Positions 1 to 39,646 of a stretch of 64,000 bases of DNA are shown here, one piece after another. Source of the DNA: Podarcis liolepis (lineage: Eukaryota); the NCBI GenBank assembly GCA_965112155.1, contig OZ218103.1; one strand, written 5' to 3'. A program made the translations under genes and the position numbers. The notes beneath the pieces were generated by a model. It saw only the letters and a program-made list of their open reading frames with translations. It searched no databases and had not been told where the DNA came from. The first letter of the stretch is position 1. Each line of letters opens with the position of its first letter.

Positions 1-85
1 TCGCAACATGAGGGCTGCCTCCCCTCCAGCATCTGCTTCTGATTTGATTGAGCAGCAGCAAAAACGGGGTCGTCGAGAGCACAAG
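1..85 (+). CDS. STRIP1: STRIP1 coding exon (partial, runs off window start)
   Basis: RNMRAASPPASASDLIEQQQKRGRREHK; donor AAG|GTAAG at 86. Confidence 0.93.
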
Positions 86-3000: not shown

Positions 3001-6000
3001 TCTGATATATATCTTCTTTGCTTGCCAGTATGTGACAAGCTATTTCCTTCGATGTTTCATGTTCATCTCTTCCCGTTATCTGTGTTTTTGAGTTTCCTTC
3101 TCCTCTTTCCTGTTCTTTGGCACTTCTGAAAGCCTTCTTTGCTTCACTCAACTTTCACCCACAGATTGCCTTGCTGAAGATCCTGCTGGCTGCAGCACCC
3201 ACCTCCAAGGCCAAGACCGATTCCATTAACATCCTAGCAGATGTTTTGCCAGAGGAGATGCCGTGAGTCTCATTCTTAGGGGGAAAGCATATGGTGAATG
3301 AAGGGCAAAGGCAATGAATGGATGTTTACTTGACATTCAGTGGTTGGGCGTTGAGTGGGCAGGCTGACATTTATTTGTATATTTAGACATTCCTTTCCTG
3401 CTGTTCTTTATTTAAAAAATTCAAATGCTTTTCATATGATGGAACATTTGATTGTCCTGAACCTTGCAAAATGATGTGTGCAGCCTAGAATTAAGAGATC
3501 TGCTAGCAGAGAAAAGAAGTGTTTGGACTGGACCTGGAAAGCTGTTTTAAAATGGGTCTCCTTAGAAATAGCAGGCCTCTTAAGTATGGAGAGGGATGTT
3601 AAGTCAGCAATCTCTTGAGAAGCTTCAAGGCAGCTTAAGTGGTGATGCTCGTGCTTCAATAGAAGACCTTTTTTTCCTGAATTTGAATGTGTCATTAATA
3701 CATGCACAGTACTTATCCATGTCTGGAGCAACAAAGATTTCATAAGATTGGTAAATAGGTTCTGCCACATAGCATACATGGGTTCAAGGCAGTACTTTTT
3801 TCTTTTAAACTTTTGTTCTGCACAGTACACCCTGAAGTGCTTATGTTGGCAAATGGAGCCACACACAGCTTGTTGAATTCTTCATTTTATTGACATATTA
3901 AACAGAGTCAGGAAGGGCTTGGAGAAAAGTATTGAGGAGTTGCCATCTCTTCCTTGATCACCCATATATTAACTAAAATTAAAGCAACCTTCTTCACTGG
4001 CCTATAGAAAAGAGAGACCATAAAGTGCTACTTACAGGAGAATTGCCCTAAAATATAAATAATAGCATTAAGCGCAGACAGATCTGCCCTACCACAGTGA
4101 GCATCACAGGCCGTCGAAGCTAATACTGCTGCTTTGCCTTCCAGAACAACTGTGTTGCAGAGTATGAAACTAGGCGTTGATGTGAATAGGCACAAAGAAA
4201 TCATTGTAAAGGCCATTTCTGCTGTTCTGCTTCTACTGCTTAAGCATTTTAAGCTAAACCATGTCTATCAGGTAAGCATGAAATGGCATGAGCAATCAGC
4301 ATTGGAATTGAAAGAGAGATTGAAGTGAATCTGGAATTTGCTTGGCTAACCATTCTTATCACATCTGTTTCCTGCTCCAGTTCGAATACATGGCCCAGCA
4401 CCTAGTGTTTGCCAACTGCATCCCCCTTATACTGAAATTCTTCAATCAAAACATCATGTCATATATCACTGCCAAGAACAGGTAGGTGGGAATATCTCTA
4501 GCACACCTGCATCCCAAAATTCTATGACAGGAAATGTGACACACTATCTTTGCAGTGGGACACCTAGATGGTATCCGGAAGGGATATCTAAGAATAACTA
4601 GTTATCCTTCACAATTTTAACTTGGAGAAAGGAAGATGTTTCATCCCACTGATAAAAAACACCTGCTGAGAAATCATTCCTCTCCACCAACCCTACTACT
4701 TGTCTGTAAAATGGATAGGTTTAAAATGTGCTTGTTTGAAAAGACATTGAGTGACGTTCATGTAGATCCCATGGCCATGAGTATTACTGGACTCAACAGA
4801 CACCATTGCCCTTGTGGGCTAAAACATTACTAAGCAGTTGGCTGATCTGCTTATTTTTCTTGGCAGTAGGTAAGTATCTGGGATAGGCAGATATAGAAAG
4901 ATGTTCATGTGTGAAGCCTCTTGGTTGTTGCCAGCTGAATAGCAGTGGGTGGAGATGATGTCACAATCATTTTTCTCATATGTTTGAACCTGGCAGGGGC
5001 AACCATTTTGGACACGGTATATTTGACTAGATAGGTCATCCATTCTAATCCGTTTGGGGTTTTTTGTGTTTTTTAGCATCTCTGTTTTGGATTACCCATA
5101 CTGTGTGGTGCATGAGCTGCCTGAGCTGACTGCAGAGAGTCTGGTGAGCTAAACTACCTGGACAGAAACATATATAGCTGAGGGGTGGAGATGGCATTGT
5201 TAATAAGGGGCAATTTCTCACTTTCCTTACTTGGTAATATTTCCTTTGTTTTGCTTTTTTTCCTATAGGAAGCTGGAGACAACAATCAGTTTTGCTGGCG
5301 AAACCTGTTTTCCTGCATTAATCTACTTAGGATACTGAACAAATTAACAAAGTGGAAGCACTCAAGGACTATGGTGAGTAGAAGGGCCTCCTCTCATAGT
5401 GCTGTTAAGGCTTTATTGATGATGTACCATCCTTTTGGCCTTAAGCAAATGGATGGTGACCAAGGCACAGACGAAGTCTTGGAAAACTGAGAGTGTTCCT
5501 TTGCTTTCTCAGATGTTGGTGGTGTTCAAGTCTGCACCCATTCTGAAACGAGCCCTCAAAGTGAAGCAAGCCATGATGCAGCTTTACGTTTTGAAGCTGC
5601 TCAAAGTGCAGACCAAGTATTTGGGGCGACAGTGGAGGAAGAGCAACATGAAGACCATGTCAGCAATCTACCAAAAAGTGCGGCACCGGCTCAATGATGA
5701 CTGGGCTTATGGCAATGGTATGTCCTGGATCTGTCTCTCCTCTTTCCACCCACTCCCAAGTCTTTCATAAGCCTTTAACTGCTATGCCAAGCCAGTTCCC
5801 TTAAATCACCCATCTGCCTTCCTGTTAACAGATCCCATCAGTAGTTGCTAGGAGCGTATGGTGATGGCTCCACTTATCCTAAACAGAGCAAGCTGAGGAA
5901 TGTGCTTCCCCACCTCTAAATTGATGTTGCTTGATAGACAGGGTGGTACAGTAACTATAGTGTTGAACTTGGACCTCAGAAATACGTGTTCAGATCCTTG

Positions 6001-6821
6001 CAATGAACCATATAGTGTAGTCTTGGACAAGTCACTGGGTCTCAGCCTTAAACTATTTTCTACTGTGGAACCTCAGTTTTTGAGCATCTCGGAAGCTGAA
6101 CAATTCGGAACACAAATACAGAAAACCTGGAAGTGATTGACTCTGTTTTCAAACGCGCCTTGGAAATTGAACTGCTTCTGCTGCATGTTTTTCCATTTTT
6201 TTCAATGGATTTTGCTGACCGCCCATTGATATTCAGTTTTTGAACATTTTGGAAGTCAAACAGTCTTCTGAAACAGAATACATTCAAAAACCGAGGTTCC
6301 ATTGTACTAGAGTGACCATAAATGACAAGATGGAGTCACTCCATACTTCTTCATAGAAGGTTGGAATACAAGTGTGAGATATTATTGATGTCTATGTCTG
6401 CTGGGAAGTCCCTATGCATCTCATCCCTAGAAGTTGTATTTCTTAAAGATCTGCCAAATGGGATGACATAATGCTGGACTGCCTGTATGACATTGTATGG
6501 CATTTTCATTGTGGGGGTATGACTGGAGCTCTTTTGCTCCTTCCGCTGATTGTTTGCTTCATGACTTTTGCAGATCTGGATGCACGTCCTTGGGACTTCC
6601 AGGCTGAGGAGTGTGCTCTGCGTGCCAGCATAGAGCGTTTCAACTCTCGCCGTTACGACCGGGCACATAACAATCCTGATTTTCTACCTGTGGATAACTG
6701 TTTGCAGAGTGTTCTGGGCCAGCGCGTAGAACTGCCTGAAGATTTCCAAATGAATTATGACTTGTGGCTGGAAAGGGAAGTTTTTTCTAGACCCATCTGT
6801 TGGGAAGAATTGCTCCAATGA
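1..6821 (+). CDS. STRIP1: STRIP1 (FAM40A) striatin-interacting protein 1, 3' part (5' end outside window); join(<1..85,197..414,759..824,2067..2130,2299..2370,2778..2852,3165..3262,4145..4271,4381..4481,5077..5143,5269..5373,5513..5717,6574..6821)
   Basis: 13 GT-AG bounded exons splice into one open frame (1530 nt from position 2, 509 aa + TGA). The peptide runs RNMRAASPPASASDLIEQQQKRGRREHK-ALIKQDNLDAFNERDPY...LWLEREVFSRPICWEELLQ* and is nearly identical to recalled human STRIP1. Synteny with UBL4B/SLC6A17 favours STRIP1 over STRIP2. Confidence 0.96.
197..414 (+). CDS. STRIP1: STRIP1 coding exon
   Basis: ttccag|GCT; ALIKQDNLDAFNERDPYKADD...CPKGLPWAPKV; donor AG|GTGAGC. Confidence 0.95.
759..824 (+). 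CDS. STRIP1: STRIP1 coding exon
   Basis: pyrimidine tract + cag; EKDIEMFLESSRSKFIGYTLG; donor GTGAGT. Confidence 0.93.
1851..1920 (+). mobile_element. L2-type LINE 3' tail remnant
   Basis: tgtaaagtgccctgtgatcctcggatgaagggtggtatagaaat followed by an (AATAA)n-like tail, typical of squamate L2 3' ends. Confidence 0.55.
2067..2130 (+). CDS. STRIP1: STRIP1 coding exon
   Basis: DTNTVVGLPRPIHESIKTLKL; ctctag| ... |GTGAGT. Confidence 0.93.
2299..2370 (+). CDS. STRIP1: STRIP1 coding exon
   Basis: HKYTSIAEIQVQMEEEYLRSPLSG; tttatag| ... |GTAAGT. Confidence 0.93.
2778..2852 (+). CDS. STRIP1: STRIP1 coding exon
   Basis: GEEEVEQVPAEILYQGLLPSLPQYM; aataaag| ... |GTGAGT. Confidence 0.92.
3165..3262 (+). 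CDS. STRIP1: STRIP1 coding exon
   Basis: IALLKILLAAAPTSKAKTDSINILADVLPEEM; acag| ... |GTGAGT. Confidence 0.94.
4145..4271 (+). CDS. STRIP1: STRIP1 coding exon
   Basis: TTVLQSMKLGVDVNRHKEIIVKAISAVLLLLLKHFKLNHVYQ; ccag| ... |GTAAGC. Confidence 0.95.
4381..4481 (+). CDS. STRIP1: STRIP1 coding exon
   Basis: FEYMAQHLVFANCIPLILKFFNQNIMSYITAKN; ctccag| ... |GTAGGT. Confidence 0.94.
5077..5143 (+). CDS. STRIP1: STRIP1 coding exon
   Basis: ISVLDYPYCVVHELPELTAESL; ttttag| ... |GTGAGC. Confidence 0.93.
5269..5373 (+). CDS. STRIP1: STRIP1 coding exon
   Basis: EAGDNNQFCWRNLFSCINLLRILNKLTKWKHSRTM; ctatag| ... |GTGAGT. Confidence 0.94.
5513..5717 (+). CDS. STRIP1: STRIP1 coding exon
   Basis: MLVVFKSAPILKRALKVKQAMMQLYVLKLLKVQTKYLGRQWRKSNMKTMSAIYQKVRHRLNDDWAYGN; ctcag| ... 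|GTATGT. Confidence 0.95.
5940..6075 (+). mobile_element. Degenerate MIR/CORE-like SINE
   Basis: tRNA-like head (ggtggtacagt...gttcagatcc) and CORE-like gtcttggacaagtcac...ctcagcctt. Confidence 0.4.
6574..6821 (+). CDS. STRIP1: STRIP1 terminal coding exon
   Basis: LDARPWDFQAEECALRASIERFNSRRY...WEELLQ*; ttgcag| acceptor, TGA 6819-6821. Confidence 0.95.
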
Positions 6822-8114
6822 CGTTTGAGAAGAGGGAATCGGAGCTAGTACGTGTGCCCAAGGACAAGGCAGCTTCCCTTTGGTCAACCGGGCATAGAGA
6901 GAAGAGATAAAACTGGTTTTTCATATGGCTTGTAATCTGCAGTTCTTTCCTTCTCCTCCAGGTGGCGGCATGGATTTATACTGCTCTCAAGGTCCTAGCA
7001 AATATGGCTTTCCTACATCTTTTGGGCTACTTCAATTACTGATTGGTTTAGAAGGTGCTAAATGGATTCAGAGCAGTTCACTTTGAGACTCAGATCAATT
7101 GAAAAACGCTGAGCAAAATACCAGTGTCAGCTTTGATTGCTATTCACATGCTCCTTGTTGGGCTTCTGTCCATTGACATTGGCCAGCTATTCTGTTCCAA
7201 AAGTAGTACGGCAGCTTTTTTCTGCTATGCCCCCACTCTTATCCCCAAAGGACAGAACCCTTTCTCTGTTAGGATGGAAAACAGTATCATGGTGGTGTGA
7301 ATGAAAGGAGAAAAGATAGGTGGTGCATACAGTTGTTCATACTAATAGGGAAAGGAGCTATCTGGAGTCCCATCTAGTGCTTGTATAATTGAGAGGATTG
7401 GGAGCAGGGAATAGGATGTGTTCATAGCAGCTGCTTCCAGTCTCATCTTGTGGATTACAAATGGCTTGGTCCTTCACAGGGAAGGCAATTTAACTGGATC
7501 AGGGATGTTACCTTCTTTTGTTCCTGTAGTGGCACCAAACAGCTAAACAACTGCTGATCATGTCCCAGTATAATTGAATATTAATATCTATTTCTTTCCA
7601 TTGAGCAATCTTCTGTTTTGAAGGCTTCACCATGGAAAGAGAAACTCTTGACATTTTCCCATTTCCATCAATGTGCCATTCTTTCCTCCTTCGTTTGCTT
7701 GAAAGCCTCAATTTTTGAATAGCTTTGCTGCACAGATGTGCATGCCAATGTAGTTTGCTTAATTTGACCCCTTGCCAGGGCACCTTGTTTGTGCCTGTGC
7801 TTCTTGGTTAAATGTCGCATAATCCTGGTCTCCTCAGTCTGGATGTTGGTGACCCAAGCAAGTAACCCATCCTACCTTGATGCTCCATCCCAGTCTAGTT
7901 CTCATAAACAGAAGATGAAGTGGCAAGCCTGTGTCTGGACTTTCCCACTGCAAGTCACACCCACAGCCATCTGGAATAGTACTGTCAGTCCAGACAAAAG
8001 TTTGCCACTTCCAATGATGTTTTGTTAGAACCTAGTCTCTGGGTTCCTGCAAACCAGGACTGTGGATGTGGTAGAAGTAAAGGCATTTACTTTAAGTAGA
8101 TAAGTGGACCTGAC

Positions 8115-8120
8115 AATAAA
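8115..8120 (+). terminator. Candidate STRIP1 polyadenylation signal AATAAA
   Basis: First AATAAA I found after the STRIP1 stop (~1.3 kb 3' UTR); an alternative ATTAAA lies at 8388-8393. Confidence 0.4.
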
Positions 8121-9415
8121 GTAGGTGCTTTCGCTTCCCTAGGAGATGGTATCTGCTCTGAGAAGACTCACAACCAAATCTAAGTGTAGCCTGTTGTATT
8201 TATAAACATTCAGGAATAGGCAAGTACAGTAGGTCATCGCCAGGTGCAATATGGTAGAATGCATTTTCCTATTTGTTTGTTTGTGCTTTGTAGTCTGATT
8301 ATATGCTCAGGCTACAATTCTAACATATTTGGAAGAGAGCCCCACTGAACAGGCCTCCTGAGTAAATATGTTTAGGTCTGGGGTGCCATTAAAATGCTAC
8401 TATGGGAGTGGGTGGGACTGCTCCAGCACTCCACATTGAGCCTCGATTACTTGTCCCCAAACACTCCCGGCTGTTTAACTTTCATCGCTGAGGTTACAGA
8501 GTGTCTCTCAGGCAGACAGCAGCAGGGACCAAGACACACAGTGTCAGCGTAGAATAAGAATCAAGTTTTAGCAAAGCCAATTCATTTGTTTTGAGCAAAT
8601 GTCACCAGGCAGACATTTGCTCACAAATTGTAACGAACTACAGATGGGGCTCCAAGCTTCTTCAAGGTGTAACATACTGAGACCGTAGGGCTCCCCCCTC
8701 CCCATCTCTGCATTGTTAACAGTGTGTTGGTGACATGATCATGCAACAGAAGCACATGGTCGCATAAAAGAATGAACAAGCATTAAAAACAACAAAATGC
8801 CTATCAAGTTACAGTGGCTACTTTTGTGTATGAATCCTGAGATCTGTACGTAACTCCTGGAAAGAAATCCAGACAATTTCTGCCCAGTGGAAATTAGGGA
8901 CTTCAGTGGGTGAGTACAGCATCTTTCTTGCTTTGCCCTGCTACCCACAGACTTCATAGGAGGCCTGGTTGCATGGTGGTTCCTTAATATGTACTTGCTC
9001 AGTTTATCTGTAAAATTTCTGATACCGGCAAACATCTGGCCATTTTTTTCCTTCTGGAGCACTACGCTATTGGATTTTGTTTTTAAATTACAGTGAAAAT
9101 GAAATCCAGCTATTATGGGTAAATTATTCTGTGAGCACTTGCTGGTCTGTGACACAGCTGATGGGGACAGTTGCATGATGGGGACAGACAGCAAACTTGA
9201 AAGCTGCCTTCCTCCCCTCCAGGAGTCCATTGATGTCTGTGGATGGAGAGGAAGGATACTTGCATTTTCCTTGGTCATTTCAAGCAGTCTGAGTTATGTT
9301 CCACAGAATTGATCCAGGAATGCAGGCAGTTAAGATCCCTTCCAGCACGATCCCCTTGCAGTAGTAGATTTGTTTATTACTTAAAGTTTTAATAGGAGAC
9401 TCTAACCAGGTAGAA

Positions 9416-9651
9416 GAGAGCTTTCCAAATTTTTTATGTCGGTGACACCCTTTTTAGACAGGTATCACTTCACGATGCAGTAAATTTATTTTGCATCATT
9501 TCACAACACAGTAATTGTTTTACTAGCAAACCAGAGGTTAAACTTAACCTCTTTTTAGCCTCAGGAGCAGTTTGGGGAGCATTCACGTGACACACCTACA
9601 CACTGCAGCCGACACACTAATGTGTCGCAACACACAGTTTGGAAAGCTCTG
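9416..9651. mobile_element. Non-autonomous hAT-like DNA transposon (MITE)
   Basis: Terminal inverted repeats (g)agagctttccaaa / tttggaaagctctg, internal inverted gtgtcg/cgacac motifs, degenerate 8-bp flanks (aggtagaa/tggtaaag). Confidence 0.7.
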
Positions 9652-9767
9652 TGGTAAAGTAAGGAATTGCAAACTGTGGACAGTATCCAGCTAACATGTC
9701 CCGTCATCACAAGGATTTCTACTTATCCCCTGCACATGCCCTGAAGGGGTTGCAGGAACCCCTAGAA

Positions 9768-9903
9768 CAGGCTTCCTCAACCTCGGCCCGCCAGATGTTT
9801 CGAGACTACAATTCCCATCATCCCCGACTACTGGTCCTGCTAGCTAGGGATCATGGGAGTTGTAGGCAAAAAACATCTGGAGGGCTGAGGTTGAGGAAGC
9901 CTG
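9768..9903. mobile_element. 136-bp palindromic hAT MITE with perfect 8-bp TSD
   Basis: TIRs caggcttcctcaacctc / gaggttgaggaagcctg; TSD ccctagaa at 9760-9767 and 9904-9911. Confidence 0.9.
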
Positions 9904-10519
9904 CCCTAGAACATATTTAAGGGGCACACAAGGGGAAGAGAGGGGAGATCTGATTGTGCCAAGTGGAAATCCTTGTGCTGGAGGGTTATGTTACTCAGCG
10001 TTACTTTAGATACCCCCATTTTTTATTATTTACTCCTACTTATTCCTCAAAAAAAAAAAAAACCAACAACACCTCAGGGCATCTCTCAACAGAAATAATT
10101 TAAAATGGCAATGAACAGTTTTATGCCTTTTCTGTTCTCTAATCTCTAATCTTTCTGAAATGTGTCTAGAAGAATTGTTCTAATAGCATACGAAGTGAAA
10201 TTTTTCTAAGCTGCTCAGACTATGGTTTTCCTTGCTGAAAAATGAGAAGAGTCTCATAGCAGTGTAATTAGATAAGAAACAGTTCCCCTTTCTGGAAATG
10301 AGACAGCGAGTTTATTCTATTTATTATGAAGATTTATAGTCTACCTTTTTACAAAATACCTAAGGTAACTTACTATAAAGATAAAAATACACTATTAATA
10401 CAAGAGAATGTGCAGTAAAATGGTAAGTGCAATTCAATGCAAGCAAGTGTAAAGTGATACCTATTGGAGCAAAAAATATTATGTCACATAGTACAGTATA
10501 AAACTGCAAATATAATGTT

Positions 10520-11170
10520 GTTATACAAATCTATTGTGCAACCACACTTGAAATACTGTGAACAGTTCTGGTTGCCTCACCTCAAAAAGGATATTGTAAA
10601 GCTGGACAAGGCTTAGAAAAGGGTAACCAAAATGATCTAGGGGCTGGAGCAACTCCATAGTAGGAGTATATAACATTTGAGGCTTTTTAGTTTCAGAAAA
10701 AGACAAGGAGGAACATTCTAGAGGTGTAAAAGTTTGTTCATGGGATGAAGAAAGTGGATAGCTAAGTTTTTCTCCTATATAATACTGAAACCTAGAGTCA
10801 TTCAGTGAAGTTCAATGTTGGAAAATTCAGGACAGACAAAGGAAAGAGCTTCACAGAGTCCATAATGAAAACACCCAGAAGATGTAGTAATGGTCCCCAA
10901 CTTGGATGGCTTTTATAAGAAGATTAGACAGACTCTTGGAGCATAAGGCTATCAGTGTCTACTAACCACAATGGCTTTGTTCTTCCTCCACTGTTGGAGG
11001 CAGTATGTCTCTAAATACCAGATGCTGGGAATCACAAGTGGGGAGAGTACTCTTTGACTCATGTCCTGCTTATGGACTTCTCATAGGTATTTAGTTGGTC
11101 ACTATGAGAACAAGACGATGGAATGAAGAGCTTTTGGCCTGATTGAACAGGGCTCTCCTTGCGTTCCTAA
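10520..11170 (+). mobile_element. CR1 LINE 3' fragment (degenerate ORF2 end + 3' UTR)
   Basis: Decayed YKSIVQPHLKYC.QFWLPHLKKDI.KLDK...KRVTKMI.GLEQL motif typical of the CR1 RT C-terminus, followed by a squamate CR1 3' UTR. Confidence 0.8.
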
Positions 11171-11344
11171 TATCAAATGGATCCTGCTCCTCAGTTGCTT
11201 TGTTTTCTACAAAGGCAAAGGCCCAGAGATTGTGTATTGATGATTGGAATGCATAAGCAGTTTTTGAGAGACGAATTGATTCATCTAATAATACTTGGAG
11301 TGCAGACAAGGCACACTCAGGCTGCTCCTTTGGCTCAGAGGCAA

Positions 11345-11625
11345 CTTAGCATTTTAGTACACATTTCTCCAGATGTAGTGTTTTGTGTGCAACATTCCCC
11401 AATATACACATTTTTGTATGCTCACTTCACTAACATTGTGCATTTCTATGCACACTTTCCCCTAATGTTTATATATTTTGGCACATATCATTTCACCGCA
11501 TTGCAAAATGCAGAGAAGTGTGAATTTCAAAGAATGTCGATTTCAGTTCGTGCTGTATCAGGAAGTGCAAATTAGGGAGTGATCATATCAAAGTGCAATC
11601 TGAATTGAAATTATCCCCCATCCAA
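11345..11625 (+). mobile_element. AT-rich interspersed repeat (likely non-autonomous DNA element), copy 1
   Basis: Internal tacacatttttgtatgc-type sub-repeats and an end (…attatcccccatcc) shared with copies at 20208-20638, 53518-53650 and 56090-56410. Confidence 0.6.
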
Positions 11626-11681
11626 ACTTCCCCCCTTTGTTCAACACCTAAAGTTCACAGTGACTGGCCCTGGTAGAATTG

Positions 11682-11708
11682 TGACATCAGAGGAAAATCA
11701 GCCAATCG
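11682..11708 (+). promoter_or_regulatory. Putative UBL4B proximal promoter: CRE-like TGACATCA + NF-Y CCAAT box
   Basis: TGACATCA 11682-11689 and CAGCCAATCG with CCAAT at 11702-11706, 75-100 bp upstream of the ATG. Confidence 0.5.
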
Positions 11709-11781
11709 CTGGCTTCCTCTTTGTCCCTTCCCATTCCCTCATTCAGGCAGGGCTTGATTTACTAGCCCATTGAGCAAGGCA

Positions 11782-12363
11782 ATGCTGCTCACAGTGAAGA
11801 GGCTGCTTGGGCAGCAGTGCCGCCTTCAGGTGTCTGGCGAGGAGAGGATCTCTCTGGTGAAAAGCCTGGTGTGTGAAGAGCTCAATGTCCCTGAGAACCA
11901 GCAGACCCTGTTGTTCCAGGGGAAAGTGCTGGAGGGGGAGCACAAATTATCAGACTATCTCATTGGCCCAGAGTCCATCCTCTATCTGGTGATTAAAAAA
12001 CCTGAGCAAACTCATCCTGAGGAGCCCTCAAAGCCGACCGCTGCCCAGCCCCACTCAGTGTGGTATCGACTCTCGCAAGTCCTGGAGAAACATTTCAGAA
12101 CTTCCGACGCAGTGAGGGTTCTCGAGCGGGTGCTGAACGACTACTACAAAGGTCTTGGCTTGCTGAGCCTGGAAAGCATCGAAGAGTTAGCCGGGGACCT
12201 CCTAAGTCCTGAGGAAGGTGAAGGTGAACTGGTGGCTACAGGTGAGCTCCCCCAGCAAGAGGGGCACCCCACAGCCCCAGTGTCTGAATCCAGGAAGGAT
12301 AAAGCGACCCAGACTGAGCCACAAGAAATGCTAGGAGGAAGGTGGTGCTGGAAGAACTCTTGA
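11782..12363 (+). CDS. UBL4B: Ubiquitin-like protein 4B-like (intronless, 193 aa)
   Basis: Single ORF from GCAATG (11782): N-terminal ubiquitin-like domain MLLTVKRLLGQQCRLQVSGEE...QQTLLFQGKVLEGEHKLSDYLIGPES, without di-Gly. It is followed by a UBL4A/TUGS-type region VWYRLSQVLEKHFRTSDAVRVLERV...LSLESIEELA. The LLGQ, VSG-E and long acidic tail features match UBL4B rather than UBL4A. Position between STRIP1 and SLC6A17 matches mammalian UBL4B. Confidence 0.85.
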   Translation: MLLTVKRLLGQQCRLQVSGEERISLVKSLVCEELNVPENQQTLLFQGKVLEGEHKLSDYLIGPESILYLVIKKPEQTHPEEPSKPTAAQPHSVWYRLSQVLEKHFRTSDAVRVLERVLNDYYKGLGLLSLESIEELAGDLLSPEEGEGELVATGELPQQEGHPTAPVSESRKDKATQTEPQEMLGGRWCWKNS

Positions 12364-12393
12364 GTAGACTTATTTAGAGAGGTCTAAGCGAAA

Positions 12394-12399
12394 ATTAAA
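12394..12399 (+). terminator. Candidate UBL4B polyadenylation signal ATTAAA
   Basis: ATTAAA 30 nt after the stop, followed by GT-rich sequence (tagtggtggtgt...gtgtctttatgt). Confidence 0.5.
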
Positions 12400-13784
12400 A
12401 TAGTGGTGGTGTATGGAACATGGAGCTGTGTCTTTATGTACCAAGGAGGAAGGAGGTTTAGTAAATGAAGATGGCCATTTTTAAAAGGACCAGAGCTTCA
12501 GTTGCTATTGAAACTAGTGCTGTGCCAGATTTTTCACAGGCAAACAGTTTTGGCATGAAAGGGAATCCTTGGGGAAGGAGAAAAGTTCACTGAACAGCCC
12601 CTGAATGCATTTACCCCTACTGACTGCTGCTTTGGTGCCATTCCCCCACCCCCCCGGGCATCTCATTTCTGGCTGTGTGATCCCAGCTAACTGACTGCCT
12701 TGTTCCTAGTGTGGTGATGTCATGGCACCACACAGCAAATCAGAGCTGGCAATGTCCAATATTCCTAAGGCCAAATGAAGCCCTAATTACACTCACTCTT
12801 GAATGAAGGAAGCCTGCATTGCCTCAATGATCCCTGTATTATCATATTGCACTGGCCATTTAATTGTCTGACAGCACAGCAAGGCAGGACGCATCAGCAC
12901 CATTGTCTTGGCAGCAGGTTGATATATTCTGTCTTCTCCCATGAATAGGTTTTTTTGGGGGGGAGCCACACCCTGAAAAATCACCATATATGGGGCATTC
13001 TGAGGGAGGTGCAAAAACACCTATGAAAGCAGTCTCCCTGTTTCAGACCTGGCTCTATCATAGGTTTATCTCCTCCACCACCACCATCACACTAGGCTTG
13101 TATCCAGTTACAGTACATGGTCCTTGGTTCCATCTTTGGCATGGCTATTTAAAATACTGGTGTCCAAAAAGCAGAAGATCTCTAGCAAGACTACATGAAC
13201 TGGTTGAGCCTGACAGCCTTGGTTGAGATGGACAATTGTCATGGTTTGTCCTTGTACGCCATCTCTCTGTACATTGAATCAAACATTATTTTCTTAAAGT
13301 CAGTGTGTCATATGGGAGCATATGGCTGGCTGGCTTCCCAGGACCACAGGCAGGAACTCAAGCATTTCTGTGGCAGCTTCCCAATTTTGTGCTGGAGCTG
13401 AAGCAAACAGTTGAAGAACCATTCCCAGGATCTATTTTACATGCTTCCCCCAGTAAATGTATTGGATTCTCATGAAAAGTGACTGTTCCCCTACCTCCGA
13501 GTAGAGCTATTCCACTCCACTTCCCAAGAAAGCAGTCTCCCAATTAGTAGTGGGTTGTTGTTTCTTCACATATACTAAGCTGGTATCAGCAAGCTGCTTC
13601 TGAAATGCTCGTTTTGACATGGTTCCCAACTTGTCATTGTGTTCCTCCGCTGAGATAACTACCCAAGAACTCAGCAGAAGTGAAGGAATGTTTTCAGAAC
13701 TGGAGATTAAAACTGACATTTCACTACAGAGGGAGTGGGGCAATTAAAGCACCAGACTTATGAAGAGTGCTACACCCTGCTGTG

Positions 13785-14140
13785 GAGATGAGATCTCTGT
13801 CTTCAAACATCTAAAAGGTTGCCATGCAGAGAGTGGAACAGACTTATTCTCTGTTGCTCCAGAGGGCAGGACCAGAGCCAATGGGTGGAAATTGCAGTGA
13901 AGCAGATCTTGCATAAAAATGAGGAGAAACACCCTAACAGTAAGAACTGTTCTACAACGGAACAGACTGCCTCAAGAAGTGGGCGGCTGGGGAGGGGGGC
14001 GGCTGGCTATCTTTTGCTAGAGGAATTTGAGCAGGGCCTGGATCTCTCACGGATGCTGTAATTGCATCCTGCATTATAGATGTTACATTGAGGCAACAGG
14101 TTGGACTCGGTGACCTCAGGTCTCGTCTGACTTTGTGATT
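13785..14140 (+). mobile_element. CR1 LINE 3' fragment
   Basis: gtcttcaaacatctaaaaggttgccat...ttattctctgttgctccagagggcaggacc...aatgggtggaaattgcag...ggttggactcggtgacctc; classic CR1 3' end. Confidence 0.8.
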
Positions 14141-14700
14141 CACATGTGCATAGCATCAAATTGTCTCATGGGGAGGGACATACTTTAAACATAAAACCCT
14201 ACAAATGTTAAAATGGTACCTTCATGCCACCACATCTCTTGTCAGCCAAAGCCAACCTTTTTTAAAAAAATAGTTTTACATTGCCTTTGGGCTATGTTCA
14301 TGTAAGGGGAAGGATATTCCACAGCTGAGAGATAGACATGGAGAATACCTCCTTGTCTCCTTGCAGTTCTTACCTGGCATATATATGGTAAATTTAGTCT
14401 ATCTTAGAAAGTGTGATGGACCATAATTAGAGCCAGGCTCAGGTATAGATGTTGAATCAAAGGTGTAATATGTGCCAGCAGCTCCAACAGAGCTATTCAG
14501 ATCAAAGAACAAGCCATAGTTTGTCTGAAGTGATTCAGTGCTTGATGAAGTCTGCAGCCACCACACTTTGGACAACATTTGAGCTTGACCAAACATTGAT
14601 TGCTGAAGAGAATCAAGAAAACATTATTCTTTTTGATTCTCATCACTCAGTGACTGCAGAAGTCATCAAACCACCCTGAGATCTACAGATGGAGGATGAT

Positions 14701-14739
14701 CTACTACTATTACTATTATTATTACTACTACTACTACTA
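14701..14739. repeat. (TAC/TAT)n microsatellite
   Basis: ctactactattactattattattactactactactact. Confidence 0.85.
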
Positions 14740-14994
14740 AGTACTGGAAAAAAGAGAAGCTATGTTTGCAGAACCATAGTTTGTCTCCCACCCTAGGGTA
14801 TTATTATTTTATGTTTTTTCATAAGAGAAAATTAATGCCCATGTAGAAAAAGTGTCCCTTTGGTAATATATAAAGGGTTGCCTGAGTGTCATTTTTGCAA
14901 CAGGTACATGCATGTCTGTCATGACTGACCAGCCCATGAATCCACCTTCTCTATACATTACAAAATGCACACCTTTTCCTGTATTGTGCGATTG

Positions 14995-15117
14995 CCACCC
15001 AGATGTTCTCTGACTCCAGCTGCCCTCATTCCTGACCCTTGGCCAAGCTGGCTAGGGCTGATGGGAGCTGGGACTGACAAGAGGTGAATCTGGAGGATCA
15101 CAGGCTTCCCACCCCTG
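14995..15117. mobile_element. Degenerate copy of the palindromic hAT MITE family
   Basis: ccagatgttctc...cattcctgacc...ggctgatgggag...atctggagg...ttcccacccctg. Confidence 0.55.
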
Positions 15118-15850
15118 CTACATGGAAATTAATTTTTCATATATGGAAAAGTAATATGGGAAGAAGCCGTAGAACGCATATTTATGTAATATTGGCTGTT
15201 ACAGCAAGAGTGCTGTGCATTGAGCTTTTCCTAGGCATTGAAACAATCAAGCTCAGCACCATGCACCACTGGTCTAATAACAGCGTTGTAGGCACTCTGC
15301 CCTCCACAGTTCCCATCAAACCACCAAACATTCCTTTGGGGTAAAATTAAATTGGCAGTAACCAAGTGCTTAATTAGCATGCAGTAGTAATTCTGTTTGT
15401 AAACACCAAAGCCAAAGGAATGAAGTTTGAGGCAGCCGTGGAAGGTGGAATTGTTTAATGAGATGAAACGCATAAAAAGGACTGAGGGAGAGGAAAATCT
15501 GTCAGTAATATAACCAACACTGGGGCTAATATGTCTGCATCTGTGCCTATATAAGGAGCACGAAAAGTGGGAGCTTTGGCCAGGCAGTGTCCCCTCAACA
15601 AACAGGGCTGTTGTATGCTGGTGGCAGGATGCCCCACTAACTGGATGCTGCCTTCAACCCCAGCTTCAGCTTCCTGACCAGACCTCAGGGCAGTTTCCCA
15701 TAGAGTGCATTGCAGTAAGCTAATGTTGAGGTTACTGCTGCATAGACCCCTGTGTGTCCAAGCTTTTCCTGTCCAGGAATGGTTGTTGCTGGCGTCCCAG
15801 CCAAAGGTGAGAAAAGGCACACAAGCAGTGATGATGGATCAATGATGATT

Positions 15851-16083
15851 GTTGTTGTTGTTTAGTCGTTTAGTCGTGTCCGACTCTTCATGACCCCATG
15901 GACCAGAGCACGCCAGGCACTCCTGTCTTCCACTGCCTCCCACAGTTTGGTCAAACTCATGCTGGTAGCTTCGAGAACACTGTCTAACCATCTCGTCCTC
16001 TGTCGTCCCCTTCTCTTAGTGCCCTCAATCTTTCCCAACATCAGGGTCTTTTCCAGGGAGTCTTCTCTTCTCATGAGGTGGCC
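15851..16083 (-). mobile_element. BovB (RTE-clade LINE) 5'-truncated 3' end
   Basis: Minus-strand peptide GHLMRREDSLEKTLMLGKIEGTKRRGRQRTRWLDSV...WRALVHGVMKSRTRLND, a (CAA)n tail, and a ~10-bp TSD aatgatgatt/agtgatgatt. Confidence 0.9.
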
Positions 16084-17729
16084 AGTGATGATTACCTCCA
16101 AGCTATATACCTGATCCTAAGGGAAAACAGTCCTTTCCAGAGCAGCCAACTGATCTATCACCCAGACCCACAAACGGCTCACCCGCCGCTGGGCCCCATT
16201 CTTGCCAGGATTCAGTCTCAGTTTATTGGTCCTCGTTCTACCCAGCGCTATATACACCAAGGTGCTTGTATGAAATTGCACAGCCTCACCTGATTCAGAT
16301 GTTATGGAGAAATAGAGGGAAATGGGGGAGAGTCATTTTGTTTGACTAAATATAGATCTTAAGCACCCTTCTGAGCACTTGCTTTTTCACGTGCTGAGAG
16401 ACGCTGCTGTGGTGTGGTCCTGATTTAGGGTGATTCGGGAGGAAATGATGCTTTCATGACCACCGAAGGACAATGGTGAAGAAGAACATCACCTCCCTCC
16501 CTCCATCTGCCCATATTGCAGTTTAGCAAGCATTAATTGCCTTCTGATGGGAAGAACGAGAGCACGCCGGACAGTAATAGTCTAATCCCTGAAAACCGAC
16601 AAAACAAGGTCCTGTTGAGATGGAGAAGCGTGTGACGTCAAGGAGAGGCTTAAAATATACTCCCGGGTTGAGGGAAGAAATCACATGACAGTTGTGAAAC
16701 ATGAGCTGCCCTTTTGAAGCACAAACCTAGGCAGAAGATTAAAGGGTGTGAGGGCAGGAGAGTAAAATTGCAGCTACTAAAACATTGTTTCTTTTCCATC
16801 CTTTTCTGAAGGCTCTGGCAGCATCCTGGGAACCAGAACAGAATTATTTCATTCAGTGTACAGCCTTTTTGTACAAATGGCTGGCTAACCAGTTCCCCAT
16901 CTGCTTTGCTTAACTGCCCCAGCTAGGCAGCCAATGAAATAAAAGCCGGGAGCAGTTCCTGGAAAGGGATAGCATTGAAGGGACCAGCTGCTGGTTCATG
17001 TTTGACTGCCCCCTATTAGTTGTTGCAGCTGGTTGATGAATGGAGCTCAGAACTGCATCCTTCAGCTTGCTTGCTTATTTGCAATTAACTATGGACTGTT
17101 TGCCTCGGCTTGCTTATTGGCTTGACATTAAATCTATCCCTTCGTTTAGTTGAAGGCTTATATATTTTGTGAATTTTAGCCAGAATCATTAGAATTAGCG
17201 CTGTGTAAAAACAAACAAAAAAAAGCCTCCCAGTGTTTTTCAGTTATTCTCCATCAATAAATAAATAAGGAACTTCTCCTAGGTGGGGTGTTGGGCTTTT
17301 GCTGCACTGAACTTACTTTTGAGGTGGCTGGAGGGTATTTCTTTGGGTGTCGTTTTTTCATTCTCCAAATCATCTACCTGGTGGTCTGCACTCTGCAACC
17401 TTCCCAAGTGCCCCTGCATATGGTTTTGAGGAACTGCAGGATGGGAAGACAACAGACCATCCAGGGGTTGTTCTATAATGGAAGAGGACATTAATTCATG
17501 TCCTCCCCATCCCACTTGTAAGTAAATGCAATCTCTTCTAAACCTAGAAGTTCCTAGAATTTCACCCCGAGATAAAAGGCAGATGATAAACCACCCTCTT
17601 TCACAAGAGATAATGATTATCTGGAAATTTAAAGGCAGGATTTGGCACAGGGCTAGTGAAAATGGGATCATCATATTCAAAAGCTGTGAGCCTGTAGTTG
17701 ATGTGATGGTGTCTACCTCTCTCATTTGA

Positions 17730-17910
17730 ACATAAGAACTCAAAAAGATATTTCATAGATCAGGCTAAGGACCCATGTAGTCTGGCATCCTGTACCCCCA
17801 GTGAAGAACCAGAAGTATGTAGAAAGCCTGTGAGCAGGAACTGAATGCAACAGCACTCTCCCTATTTGTGATTCCCAGCAGAGACATACTTCCTCTGACA
17901 GTGGAAGCGG
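17730..17910 (-). mobile_element. CR1 3' UTR remnant
   Basis: Reverse complement resembles the CR1 3' UTR at ~10980-11170 (cataagaac...gatcagg...tgtgattcccagca...catacttcctctgacagtgga). Confidence 0.6.
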
Positions 17911-17994
17911 GGTGTGTGTGTGTGTGTGTGTGTTTGTGTTTGGACTTGTGTTTGTTGGGGTTCTGGGTAAGATGAGCTTTTGCTCTAATCCAGC

Positions 17995-18132
17995 CAGGGG
18001 TGGAGAACCCAGTGGATTCCAGATGTTGCTGGACTAGGGCTCCCATCACCCCTCGTTATTGACCAGGCTGTGTGGGAAAGGTGGGTGCTGAAATCTAAGA
18101 ACATCTGGAGGGCCACTAGATTCCAGTCCCTG
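17995..18132. mobile_element. Palindromic hAT MITE family copy
   Basis: caggggtggagaacc...ccagatgttgctggact...tcccatcacc...aacatctggagggccac...ccctg. Confidence 0.7.
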
Positions 18133-20207
18133 AGCAAGGCAGTGCCACATTTGCATGCAAGTTGCCATACTAAAATCTGCCCTGATAATGTAGGGCTTGT
18201 TCCCGCAGTCACGTTCTGTATGATATAGTTTCTTCAGCAGCAGTAATGTGTCTCTGCAATGAACTTTGGGAAGCTGAACTAGTCCTGTGAATGCTTGTTG
18301 CAGAATCTGCTCCCTATGTCATGAAAAGGATTGTGGAAAGTAAGTCAGACCATGCATGATGTGAGGAATTGTGACCAGGATACACACTGGAACATTCACT
18401 GGATACACTTTAATCTGCCAGGAAAGTTAACGTAGTTTTGGCTTTCCTGTGTAAGAAATGAGTGAGCCCCCAGACAAGACTCTACAGAAATCCAGGACAT
18501 TCAAAGGTGGGGGCAATTTACTTCCGGGAAAAAAGACAGAGGCTCTTTTCTCTAGCCTAGGGAATAGTTCTTCCTAGTTTGTCCATAGGGTAAACCCAAC
18601 CTTATTGCATTTTTCATTCAGCTAAAATTAGAACAGAGCACAGTATTAATTAGAAGTGTAGTCAATGCAGAGTAACATTACACGATTGTTTTCTACATCT
18701 TTCTGAGCTTAGTGCTTCTCAAATAAATCGGCACTTGCTATTCCCGTAATGGCATCATGATGACTCATGTTCAGAGTGTAACTCTCTGTACCACCCCAGT
18801 TGCAAGTGTAAAGTGATTCCTCATTTTGCCTTTATGTAGCAGCAAATTATTTCTCATTTTGTATGTCGGCATACCAGTATTGCACTGCATGCATGTACAC
18901 TAGCCTCAGGGGGCATTCCCCTTGCCTCTAGAAACCTCAGAGAGAAACACCTGAAACCTGAAGAAAATAATCTCTATCAACTCTCGCTGACATTTTATAA
19001 GGCATCCTCAGTATCTCTAAAAGACAAAATAACATGATGGTGAAGATTCCAAAGGGGACGCTATTTCCTTGCTTCCAGTCTTCTCTCTGTACCATTGAAA
19101 AGGGGCTTTGGTCCAGAGCAGGGAGGCATAACATTTCATTCCTAGCGTGTTAATGTCTAGCGCACTGGGGCATCCACTTACCATTTTGCTTCTTCAGAAA
19201 GCACTAGCAGTGTCTGCTGCTGGGACAGCCATCTAAATGGGTTACTGACCTGACAAGGTGGGCAACTTCCTGGTCTTAAAGATGGCAGCTGAAGCCTGAA
19301 AAGGCGCAATTTAGAGAAAACTCAGACAGTCACGATGTCTGCATCGTAACCAAAGAAACTGTGCTTGCTGAGCATTTCCCTGCTGCATACAACTCTCAAA
19401 GGGCTCATGGGATGAGGAGACGGCAGCTTCAGCTCTGACCCAGTCTTGTTACTATTAAAACACTACCTCTTTCCTAATGCTTCCTAAAACATCAGCCTGC
19501 AAAATCCTCTCTCGTCAGCATCCATACTTGCCAAGATCAGTCTTTATCTCCTTGTGTTTTGACTTTCCTTCCCACAAAGACCCAAATGTTGATTTTTCCA
19601 AATTATCCCCCCCCCCGCCCTCATCCTACCTTCCCTCTCCGTCAGCTATGAATGAATGGCTGGTGGTCATGTGATTCTATCACCATGGAGACACATGGCA
19701 GCTGTAAGATGTAAGAATCAGGATCATAGGAGGGCGGCTGCATAACCAGCAAGTTATTTATAGGTTGCTGTTTGTGAATTTATGGAATCACATCTGTCTT
19801 TGAGCATCATGTTTCATATTCACGCTGATTCCGGTGGGGCAGGGCATTATTCTTTACAAGCGTGCATTATACAAATCCCCCAAGTCTATGAATTAATGCA
19901 GAGAAGGAAGGGTTCTAGGTAGCTTATACAATCTCTGAGCAAGCTTAGATTAGGCTGGTTTAAAATTCACATTAATTTTTTCATCATGAGATCCTCTCAC
20001 AAACTTACTCAGATTTCTCAATACATAGGTCAAACCACATCTTTGAACATAAGCTGCTGATGCCTGCTCCATGAACACATGACGGAAAAGCCATACAGCA
20101 ACCTATGATCATTAAACAAAGAGGTTTCTTTTTGTTTTTTCCATGCAAATAGGAAGCAGGAGCCAGCGCCTGTTGGCAGCACAAGGCGAGATGTGGCATC
20201 ACCCATT

Positions 20208-20638
20208 ACAGGGTTGAATCTGCCAATTTTGGGTTGCTCGGTTTCTCATTTTTCCAATTCAGTTCACCACATTTCTGCAGCAATCTTTGGGGGGGGGGGA
20301 AGCGTCATGAAAATTATTCAGTATTTTAATGCAAATTTATCCTAATAAACACATTTTTGAATGCAATTTTAGCTGATGTACACATTTTTGCAAACATTCT
20401 TTCTGAATATGATGCATATTTGTTTGCTATTTTCACCAATATATTCTTTTTATGCACACTTTAACCTCATATTTGATTTTTTGCAAACACTGGTTGGTTG
20501 GTAATTGCATCACAAAATTTGGATGAGTGCAAATTTCAAAGTTTAGGTCTGTTTTGTTTCTTGCCTTGTTTTGGAAAGTGAGAATCTGATGGATTCACCT
20601 CTAAATGTGAACTGAATCAATATTCTCCCCCATCCCTA
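20208..20638 (+). mobile_element. AT-rich interspersed repeat, copy 2 (longer)
   Basis: Same sub-repeats and terminus (…ttctcccccatcccta) as 11345-11625. Confidence 0.6.
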
Positions 20639-21981
20639 ACTATAGGTACCCATTTCTGCCCCCTTTCTTAGAAGGTGAACATAATCTATTCAGCCCAACC
20701 TTAAACATTTTGTTATCCCCTAGGTAAAATATGAATAATGTGATCCAGCAGGCAGAAAGTTGTATCTGGATCTGGAGGACTTAGAAGTATCCATAAGCTT
20801 TCTTTGGCAGAGCAAATAACAGTTTGAGGTGGGGACTGCTTATAGCAGAAAAATGATGGGAGGGGGTGAGGGGGAAAGAGTTAACCCATTGCTGGTTATT
20901 GCTGCTTTAACTTACCACCCACGGGGAAAGATGAGTGGAGGTGTCCGGATATTATTTTCTTAATTTTTGCTTTGCCAGTTCCATGCTTGCACAGCAGAGA
21001 GATGCAGACTGAACTCTTCTCTGGAGGCTGGACCAGCTTAGGATCCAGTGGATCCTTGCCAGCCCTGTCCTGCCCCCATTCTACCCTATTCAGGGTTTAG
21101 ATCATCAGTAGCTTGTGCCATCAGTGGGCACAGTAGCAGCTTTTGTGGAAGCAGATCCTCACCAGCAGCAGCAGCAGCAGTGCCACAGCCGAGAGTAACA
21201 CCTGGCTCCCTCCTACAGTGCATATCTAGGACTAGGATTGCTCTGCTCAGTAGGACATGAGAAACAATAGGAAAGATGGCTTCTCTTTTTAATGCTGTGG
21301 TAGCCTTTCTTCATTAAATTGTCAGTGCAGAATCACAAATTTGTTAAACATCTAAATGAGCTAGGTTCTGCACAATGGATAAATAAGGGGATAGGCCTGC
21401 TGGAACATGTTTTAGTGGGGTCCTTTTTCTTACTTATAAAATAATCCCGTTTCCACCAAAAAGAGAGAGAGAGAAAAGACTTCCACCAAACAGAACGAAC
21501 CTCTTGTCACACCTAAGACTGTCCAGCTCTTGAGGAGTTTCTTTGCCCTAACTCAGACTCCTGCCTTCCACACTGCTTTAGAAAAAATATAAACAAGAAG
21601 AGAACATTTGATTTATGTCTCCAAAGACACAGAACTTGACAGTATTTTGTGACATGTCTCAAGGGACATAACCCACTGTCTGAAGCACACAGGGAAAATT
21701 CTGATAAATTGCCATTTAAAAAACCAAGGAAGCCAAATGTCAAAATATAAATAACTTTATTGCACAGGCAGGGTGGAGGTAAAAGAAGGGAAAAGGAAAG
21801 GTAACAACCATCTATAGATCCCCAGCCCAGCAGATAAAATGGATAATGAAAATCTAACTGAGTCACCAATGTGCTATGTGCTTGGATGAATTCTTTACCC
21901 AGAGGCAGTTTTTCTTTTTAAATACCTGCACCATCAAGAAAGACACCCATATTGAGGTTATTGCAATATGGGTGCAAATGC

Positions 21982-22391
21982 ATTTATATTTATTTGTTTA
22001 TTAAACTTATATCCTGCCCTTCCACCCAAAGGAAGGAGCCCAGGGCAGCAACCAACAACTGATATAACAATAAAAACGTCCTTACATTATTCCAGTAGAG
22101 ATGTAGACAGGGAAAGATCTTGACTTAAAGGCTTGTTGGAAGTAGGTGCTGAAAAGACAACAGAGATGGCACCTGTCTAATACTTACAGGAAGGGAATTC
22201 TAAAGGATAGCACTAAGACGCAATTGTGAGAAGCAGACCCTCCTGATAATGTGGCATCTGCAGGAGGACTTCAGCGGCACAGCAGTGATTGGTTGGGTAT
22301 ATAAGGGGTGAGGTGATCTTTCACATATCCTGGTCCCAAGCTGCAAAGGCTTTATACACCAAAACCAGCAGCTGGAACTTGGCCCAGTAGC
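21982..22391 (-). mobile_element. L2 LINE 3' fragment
   Basis: (TTTA)n-like tail, tatatcctgcccttc...ggagcccagggc, and gctttatacaccaaaaccagcagctggaacttggcccagtag (reverse of the L2 'F(K)LLVLVYKAL' region). Confidence 0.7.
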
Positions 22392-24119
22392 TTCACATGT
22401 TGGCAATATCCTGCCCCAGTGAGCAGTTGAGCTGAGCTTTTATGCTCCTTGACCAGTCAGGAGCTCGTGCAGGAGGTTGCAAGATTGAATGCACCCTCTC
22501 ACCAAGCTCTGCATCAGGCAGGGAGGCGGCACTTGCCCCAGTCCTTGCAGCGCTTACCAACTGCCTCATCAAAAGACAGCAACCCAGGGGAGTAAGCAAA
22601 GTGCTCAGGAACTCGCTTCCTTCTCCAGGTTCCTGGTGCTGCAGTTTTTAATAGATTACAAAACAGATGAAATAAAGTTATTTCATTGACTGCCCTCATA
22701 TTGTTATGTACAGAACAACACTGAGGGTGTTTAAATTATAATAACAACAGCAACTTTGTACATTTGTGAAGTTAGCGTGTTATTAGATGCACAAAAATGG
22801 CACCTACGCAGCAGAATCATCTGCCATGGCTGGCCTTGGGCTAATCACTTGTCTCTTAGCTTCAGTGTTCCTTGACTGAAAAAATCAGGTGTTCTTTGTT
22901 TGCCTTCGACCCGTTTTCGGGATTGGTGTTAGAATTAGTAGTAGATTTGTACTTATACATGCAGGCTATCTCGTGGCTCATGGGGCTCAGCAGGCAGTTG
23001 ACTCCACTCTCCATGTACACTATTACTGTGCATCTGGCTGAAGTTAAGTGGACCTTAGGGTTTTGGTGAACAAGGAAGTTTAACCCACAAGCTTATAGTC
23101 TGCCTTTGTTGATTGGTGCATGAAACTGGCAGCATATTAGCAGAATATTTGCCTTATGGACAAGCTCTGCTGTCATTTGCAGAGCAGTTTGGAATCAGAG
23201 CTGCCACCTTTTTATGTCAAAAGTGCCATTCCCCTGGAACCTGGGGATGGTGGTGGATCAGATAGAACCAATACAGAATCTGGCAGACTGGGGGGTGATG
23301 CCAGAGTGAGACTTGGTGTTTTATTGCTGGGTGGGTCATGGTAGAATTTGGTCAACCATGAGTGGTTAATTACGTTGATTGCTGCTGAACTTGGCCTCTC
23401 CCTCTCTGCCCTTCGGCAGTGAGCAGACCTCCATTCTGGGGGGGTGGGGGAGTAAAGATTGCACCACCATGCAGCAGAACCAATTGCCACAGCTGGCTCT
23501 CCCTCCCTGCTCTTGGTCACTGAAGTCCTCCAGTCCTGGGGGGAAATGATTAAGAAGCTCACAGCTGGACAACAGACCATCAGTTGCCACTAATGGGAGG
23601 GGGAGGAATGAGATGGGATGGAGGTCAATGGTGGGGACACTCATGACCAGATGAAAATAGACTTTGAGTGGAGGATATGCCACCCGAGCAGTGGAATGTG
23701 TAAGAGTGGCTAGGAATGTGATTACCGGTACATTGCATCATTTTATGCAATGTGCTTAGTGGATCCTTCAGAATAATACTGCCATTCTGCCAAAGGCGCT
23801 TTACCATTTAAAACACCAAAACAAGGACAAGCGGCCTCAGGGCATTGGTGCCACTTCAGGAGCTGATGATGGCACTAGTTCCTTGGTTTGGGCTTCTTCC
23901 CTTCTGCTTTCCTCTCGGAGCACACAACTTTTTAGACAGATCCCTGTCTGTGTGGTGAGGATATGCCCTGGCTGGATCTTTTCAAGTGTGTGGCCTTTAG
24001 ACTGCTCCCGAGCTTGAGCTCTCTGAGCTGGGAAGTTCTTGATTCTTCAGACCCAAACTCTGGGCCCTTGATAATACTGCCTTGCCTATAAGCGTTGGAA
24101 CTCTTCTGATCTTCCAGGT

Positions 24120-39599: not shown

Positions 39600-39646
<47 letters not shown>

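Follow-up and report, generated by a model that had tools for sequence, protein, structure and literature searches.

Mammalian UBL4B, reportedly described by Yang and colleagues in 2007 as a testis-expressed intronless copy of the X-linked gene UBL4A, is repeatedly cited as an X-derived retrogene, and meiotic silencing of the X is invoked to account both for its origin and for its expression in the testis. It resembles in this the out-of-X retrogenes PGK2, RPL10L, CSTF2T and CETN1, which are likewise autosomal intronless copies of therian X-linked genes. However, these retrogenes are explained by therian meiotic sex-chromosome inactivation, whereas UBL4B would predate the therian X if the lizard gene analysed here is its orthologue. 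UBL4A (GdX) acts in the BAG6-GET4(TRC35)-UBL4A complex; it has four exons and encodes a protein of about 156 aa that ends in EMGFLD in sauropsids. A more remote relative is yeast Get5/Mdy2, which is similarly a UBL-domain adaptor in the tail-anchored protein pathway, recruiting Sgt2/SGTA, but which carries an N-terminal Get4-binding domain and, in place of the Tugs domain, a C-terminal homodimerization domain; it is only a distant neighbour of the lizard protein (Atlas score 0.77). Testis or post-meiotic expression of UBL4B has been shown for mouse and human only. According to published gene lists, the human order is AHCYL1-STRIP1-ALX3-UBL4B-SLC6A17-KCNC4 (PMC9394163), and cattle (PMC7655849) and mouse (PMC4244117) have the same series.

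The original prediction started from the premise that UBL4B is described as a mammalian gene, and this premise is out of date. The NCBI name 'ubiquitin-like protein 4B' is already carried by proteins of Zootoca, Rhineura, Elgaria, Hemicordylus, Tiliqua, Eublepharis, Sceloporus, Paroedura, Anolis sagrei and Gekko, and Yu et al. (2021, PMC8267814) state that UBL4B is present "in reptiles and mammals". The same paper places Anolis UBL4B on chromosome 4 with one exon and UBL4A on chromosome 1 with four exons, and lists UBL4A only, with no UBL4B, for painted turtle, chicken, frog and fish. It nevertheless treats UBL4B throughout as X-derived, discusses compensation for meiotic sex-chromosome inactivation, and gives 170 million years as its minimum age, with reference to Yang et al. 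2007. Lizard UBL4B is thus not new, being present in RefSeq and in one paper; in the literature that we searched, no paper concludes that the copy predates the therian X.

The window, by which we mean the whole analysed stretch of 64,000 nucleotides from Podarcis liolepis (contig OZ218103.1), contains on its plus strand a frame of 193 codons, uninterrupted by stop codon or intron from the ATG at 11782 to the TGA at 12361-12363. Its coding features are as follows.

11782-12363, plus strand: UBL4B coding sequence, 193 codons and a stop, intronless, with 97% identity to Zootoca 'ubiquitin-like protein 4B'.
11788-12000, plus strand: ubiquitin-like (UBL) domain, residues 3-73 (Pfam PF00240, E=2e-14).
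12061-12198, plus strand: Tugs domain, by which UBL4A is held to the BAGS domain of BAG6, residues 94-139 (E=1.6e-12 for Pfam PF17840, covering positions 1-46 of the 47 in the profile).
12298-12318, plus strand: DKATQTE, residues 173-179, a TQT-anchored candidate motif of the LC8/DYNLL type, forming a conserved island in the variable tail.

Both Pfam matches of the window protein exceed their gathering scores (53.5 bits against a cut-off of 25.4 for PF00240, and 47.8 bits against 27.7 for PF17840), which bears out the predicted combination of an intact intronless 193-aa frame with a ubiquitin-like domain and a BAG6-binding TUGS-like region. When polyubiquitin chains, which score by repetition, are set aside, the best match among solved structures is human UBL4A, residues 1-149 of which (7ru9_E) are colinear with the frame without a break (E=4.5e-33); the Tugs segment alone gives a gap-free alignment with the UBL4A chains of 4x86 and 4wwr, two structures of UBL4A with BAG6. 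The frame is a real UBL4-family gene and not a chance ORF. The protein has the same two-domain order as UBL4A, but differs from it in the absence of introns from its gene, in its length, in a longer tail that is judged to be disordered from its low conservation, and in divergence at UBL residues 7-14 and 46-53 (KRLLGQQCR and QGKVLEGE). As to the UBL4B-like residues that had been noticed, TVKRLLGQ and VSGEE were found, whereas the supposed acidic tail has some acidic runs, such as SPEEGEGE, and is overall not clearly acidic.

The gene stands between two recognizable neighbours, the exons of which were translated from open frames and searched singly.

2-6821, plus strand: 3' half of STRIP1, at least 10 coding exons in open frames, for example 2-415, 4101-4325 and 5423-5767.
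About 6573-6818, with the stop codon at 6819-6821, plus strand: last coding exon of STRIP1, matching human STRIP1 756-837 (7k36_I, E=2e-49).
9802-9910, strand not assigned: high-copy interspersed repeat (SINE-like) in the STRIP1-UBL4B spacer, contig-set depth 7,000-25,000.
24001-26000, plus strand: G+C-rich block, 0.57 against about 0.43 in the remainder of the window.
36825-47517, plus strand: SLC6A17-type transporter gene, first coding exon at 36825 (MPKHSKVTQ...), nine frames matching the SNF family (PF00209).
Within 40484-40708, 43686-43913 and 47212-47517, plus strand: further SLC6A17-type exons, with more downstream.

Upstream of UBL4B, five plus-strand frames match DUF3402 and STRIP peptides can be read directly, the last coding exon agreeing with human STRIP1 at nearly every residue; 4,960 nt separate the STRIP1 stop from the UBL4B start codon. 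Some 24 kb downstream of UBL4B lies the first coding exon of the SLC6-type gene. Its best solved relatives are B0AT1/SLC6A19 and SIT1, the PDB holding no SLC6A15 or SLC6A17 entry, and its nearest named Atlas cluster is 'SLC6 member 15 family', so that the sequence places this transporter only in the B0AT/SLC6A15-like branch. We call it SLC6A17 because of its linkage to STRIP1 and because Slc6a17 adjoins Fam40a/STRIP1 in Anolis (McGonnell et al. 2011, PMC3166657). With that name resting on linkage and literature, the predicted STRIP1-SLC6A17 interval stands, and all three genes share the plus strand. The G+C-rich block is probably the promoter or 5' exon region of SLC6A17. The repeat in the upstream spacer collects a pile of hundreds of raw RNA reads; its ends are loose on either side, the flanks are many and varied, and some joints are inverted.

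Lizard UBL4B and mammalian UBL4B are alike in being single-exon genes with a UBL and a Tugs domain, in lying beside SLC6A17 on its STRIP1 side and in being under purifying selection, but mammals have ALX3 between STRIP1 and UBL4B, and the lizard lacks it. From 6800 to 24500, the UBL4B frame aside, no homeobox or other Pfam-detectable coding remnant was found on either strand. This agrees with the documented loss of Alx3 from the lizard, at exactly the STRIP1-UBL4B position, as well as from chick and frog (McGonnell et al. 2011, PMC3166657).

Transcription of UBL4B was assessed in public runs compared over 9800-15300, the most informative of which, X6, comes from a close relative of the window species that is about 2.4% diverged; the tissue labels of the RNA runs, X6 included, are coded. 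The features concerned are the following.

11682-11689 (TGACATCA) and 11702-11706 (CCAAT), plus strand: promoter-proximal motifs, about 30-55 nt upstream of the 5' end of the transcript contig.
11738-12401, plus strand: extent of the unspliced UBL4B mRNA, taken from the close relative, with a 5' UTR of about 44 nt and a 3' UTR of about 38 nt.
12394-12399, plus strand: ATTAAA, a variant polyadenylation signal, right after which the relative's transcript contig ends.

In run X6, UBL4B is covered by one contig of 667 nt at a depth of 338, with 16 differences from the window and neither gaps nor joints, and its flanks are at depth 0-3. Because genomic DNA cannot yield such a depth with such flanks, the contig represents an abundant, unspliced and compact mRNA, and a lack of expression, which had been named among the refuting outcomes, is contradicted in this relative. 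Three more runs of the same study gave similar shares of the stretch. Two other contig sets cover the entire region, but at a depth that is low and even, and are uninformative on expression. In a bulk RNA run bearing the species label of the window, about one read fell on the UBL4B frame (its mates fitting plus-strand RNA in most stranded libraries), and the expression of UBL4B is therefore not ubiquitous. The element TGACATCA is a CRE palindrome with one mismatch, and it may contribute, together with the CCAAT box, to the transcription of UBL4B. In mammals, spermatid genes driven by CREM typically have CRE-like sites close to the start.

Comparison of the window with the X6 transcript also shows how the frame evolves. 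Within the frame the two differ at 15 sites, 10 synonymous and 5 nonsynonymous, which gives by the Nei-Gojobori method a dS of 0.077, a dN of 0.011 and a dN/dS of 0.15 (one-sided binomial test against the neutral site fraction, p=4.8e-4). For this one pair, neutral evolution, which had also been named as a refuting outcome, is thus contradicted. All five nonsynonymous differences fall within or beside the linker or tail, and S132N alone lies inside the Tugs range. At two sites that are conserved elsewhere, the window allele departs from the relatives' contigs, from Zootoca and from most other squamates, with S132 (12176) in place of N and L150 (12230) in place of P; both nonsynonymous changes are specific to the lineage or to the individual. 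Intact UBL4B frames occur on both sides of the squamate-tuatara split, in 16 named lepidosaur species, with carriers among lacertids, an amphisbaenian, an anguid, a cordylid, skinks, geckos, iguanians, a teiid, a varanid and the tuatara, and the gene is at least as old as that split. Mean pairwise identity among these proteins is 0.86 in the UBL domain, 0.61 in the linker, 0.86 in the Tugs domain and 0.53 in the tail, and between the same pairs of species UBL4B evolves about twice as fast as UBL4A. UBL4B is under purifying selection.

These data bear directly on the view that the locus is a transcribed retrocopy with no function at the protein level, its frame having stayed open by chance or because of a recent origin. 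The fertility of mouse Ubl4b and Ubl4a;Ubl4b knockouts (PMC8267814) speaks for such a view, as does the one RNA run that is nearly without reads. On the other side stand the dN/dS of 0.15 (p=5e-4) and the survival of intact frames with modular conservation across lineages that separated some 250 million years ago, and we regard a functionless retrocopy as scarcely credible and already effectively refuted.

The distribution of UBL4B outside lepidosaurs is more restricted than had been proposed. Word-index protein searches with the window protein, a 17-sequence lepidosaur profile and the UBL half of the Sceloporus protein gave lepidosaur UBL4B and sauropsid or fish UBL4A only, with no UBL4B from a turtle, crocodilian or bird and neither protein from a mammal. 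A separate, exhaustive profile search was dominated by polyubiquitins, which sum many repeats, and only two UBL4-type proteins were among the 150 matches listed, neither of them mammalian. The description of an amniote-wide gene is accordingly too strong, no UBL4B having been found in these searches from turtles, crocodilians, birds or snakes. In the same non-exhaustive word-index search, five snake species gave UBL4A and none gave UBL4B (P0026, P0028, P0034-P0036 and P0044), and every other major squamate lineage gave UBL4B; this suggests, as a lead only, that UBL4B has been lost or has strongly diverged in snakes. One further protein, from a Logan assembly (P0019), is UBL4B-like, 155 aa long and placed on a long branch inside squamates, with a 4-residue deletion in the UBL domain; NGT replaces the conserved IGP, and the TQT tail is missing. 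Constraint on this copy may be relaxed, and its source is possibly a snake.

The relationship of UBL4B to UBL4A was examined in trees of 20 lepidosaur UBL4B proteins with UBL4A from 11 squamates, two turtles and one alligator, rooted with three teleost UBL4A proteins. Lepidosaur UBL4B forms one clade (100/100) on a long stem, whose length is close to 1 substitution per site, and it branches with amniote-type UBL4A after the teleost split (100/100). Its identity to squamate UBL4A is 54-58%. The parent gene UBL4A lies elsewhere in the genome, the two genes being on different chromosome-scale contigs in four species, in addition to the chromosome 1 and chromosome 4 locations in Anolis.

The rooted trees count against the idea that UBL4B is an old DNA-level paralogue, arising for example by genome duplication, that lost its introns later and is not a retrocopy. 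Such a history has no direct support beyond the fact that neither a poly(A) tract nor a target-site duplication survives at UBL4B, whereas in the trees UBL4B groups with amniote-type UBL4A, and teleost UBL4A falls outside that group (100/100). To our knowledge, the paralogous counterparts of the neighbours (STRIP2, AHCYL2, SLC6A15/16 and KCNC1-3) are not linked to UBL4A. In addition, all coding introns are missing at once, and fish, frog, turtle and chicken have UBL4A only (PMC8267814). We consider a DNA-level origin very improbable.

The trees are less decisive as to when the retrocopy was made. With all columns, maximum likelihood places lepidosaur UBL4B as sister to squamate UBL4A (78/60), but the alternative survives the AU test (p-AU 0.38). 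With the UBL and Tugs columns only, sauropsid UBL4A forms one clade (85/31) and UBL4B falls outside it, and the AU test rejects neither topology. The position relative to sauropsid UBL4A depends on the columns used, weakly indicating a lepidosaur-specific origin in one case and weakly an older one in the other. Individual sites, polarized by eye against human UBL4A, give conflicting signals as well.

This instability has to be weighed against the possibility that lizard UBL4B is an independent retrocopy of UBL4A, made in the lepidosaur stem after the turtle/archosaur split and before the tuatara-squamate split, and an analogue of mammalian UBL4B. The full-column tree favours it, and does so against the direction expected from long-branch attraction. 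So do the derived residue I23, which only squamate UBL4A and lepidosaur UBL4B have in common, the residue being V in fish, human, turtle and alligator, and the agreement of UBL4B with sauropsid UBL4A at five three-state sites. The absence of UBL4B from turtles, crocodilians and birds would then need no losses. However, this signal is weak and unstable, given the AU result for the alternative and the reversal of the tree when the columns are restricted; V/I/L sites are obviously homoplastic, and UBL4B lacks the sauropsid-derived I93. Landing in the interval and orientation of mammalian UBL4B would moreover have to be a coincidence or the result of a local insertion bias, and we estimate the chance of a copy reaching the same 20-30 kb interval in the same orientation at about 1e-5 for a genome of 1.5 Gb. 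An independent lepidosaur retrocopy is therefore unlikely in our judgement. Its full form, namely that UBL4A was retroposed twice, in stem mammals and separately in stem lepidosaurs, into one shared interval and orientation, with both copies maintained by selection, is the history towards which the full-column tree and residue I23 lean, and we hold it to be distinctly improbable. If it were true, it would represent recurrent, site-convergent birth of a retrogene and would imply a strong local bias for insertion or for copy survival.

Because mammalian UBL4B has a matching gene order, a single origin before the mammal-sauropsid split is the most likely reading. On the basis of the conserved order STRIP1-(ALX3)-UBL4B-SLC6A17, the lizard gene is probably the orthologue of mammalian UBL4B, both descending from one retroposition in the amniote stem. 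The original prediction of an origin before that split is thus supported by the shared STRIP1-SLC6A17 position, and receives no steady backing from the trees against UBL4A, which flip with the columns. According to the single-origin history, UBL4B would be a processed copy of the housekeeping gene UBL4A that was retroposed once into the STRIP1-SLC6A17 interval, before the mammal-sauropsid split and therefore before the therian X. It would then have been kept in mammals and in lepidosaurs (tuatara and lizards), and lost or left undetected in turtles, crocodilians, birds and apparently snakes. Since no UBL4B was found in turtles, crocodilians and birds, this model needs at least one loss.

The expected function follows from the domains. 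The UBL4B transcript is compact, unspliced and about 0.66 kb long, and the gene is kept under purifying selection. By domain homology UBL4B, with its putative binding to BAG6 and SGTA, may work like UBL4A: the Tugs helices are predicted to dock on the BAGS domain at the C-terminus of BAG6, and the UBL domain to recruit the co-chaperone SGTA. The result would be an alternative BAG6-GET4-UBL4 module that hands off tail-anchored and mislocalized proteins.

The tail offers a further candidate contact, which is known here from lepidosaurs. The island K-[DE]-x-A-T-Q-T-E-P has an identity of 0.84, compared with 0.53 and 0.43 in the tail on either side. It is kept from the tuatara (RDQATQTEP) to lacertids, reading K-D-K-A-T-Q-T-E-P in the window and K/R-E/D-Q-A-T-Q-T-E-P in other lepidosaurs. 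In Gekko japonicus it has changed to EHATHTEP, and the truncated models of Salvator and Varanus lack it. Ligands of LC8 are described as having a residue able to form hydrogen bonds at -4, a positive or polar residue at -3, a small one at -2 and P, D or E at +2, and many TQT peptides fail to bind LC8 (PMC6607443). DKATQTE fits every listed LC8/DYNLL preference: position -4 can form hydrogen bonds, -3 is K/Q, -2 is small, and E follows the TQT anchor at +2. The conserved TQT in a disordered tail is predicted, as a candidate ligand, to let lepidosaur UBL4B bind the dimeric hub LC8/DYNLL.

The question of an escape from the X can also be approached through the sex chromosomes of lizards. Sex linkage of the region that corresponds to the therian X (chicken 4p) arose independently in four groups, namely therians, lacertids, Furcifer chameleons and Paroedura geckos (PMC10901801), and lepidosaurs with other sex-determination systems also retain UBL4B. 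Sex linkage of the parent gene cannot explain the origin of lepidosaur UBL4B under either history, and under the single-origin history it cannot explain that of mammalian UBL4B either. As a separate observation, the lacertid ZW system shares the chicken-4p region with the therian X (PMC10901801), and the parent UBL4A (P0032, on a 42.8-Mb contig of Zootoca) might be Z-linked in lacertids.

In summary, the retroposition that gave rise to UBL4B is likely to be older than the therian X, and hence the mammalian gene called 'X-derived' is likely to be older than the X itself. This corollary is a short step from data already known, and represents a modest rather than a striking advance. The retention of UBL4B under purifying selection in lizards and tuatara sharpens a puzzle, as the gene is dispensable for the fertility of laboratory mice (PMC8267814). 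The TQT motif of lepidosaurs points to a testable connection of LC8/dynein with the BAG6 triage module. The usual dating puts the amniote split at over 300 million years ago. Provided that the lizard gene is orthologous, the copy was made before that, while UBL4A was still autosomal; escape from the X could then not explain the birth of UBL4B, although it could still explain its later use in mammals.
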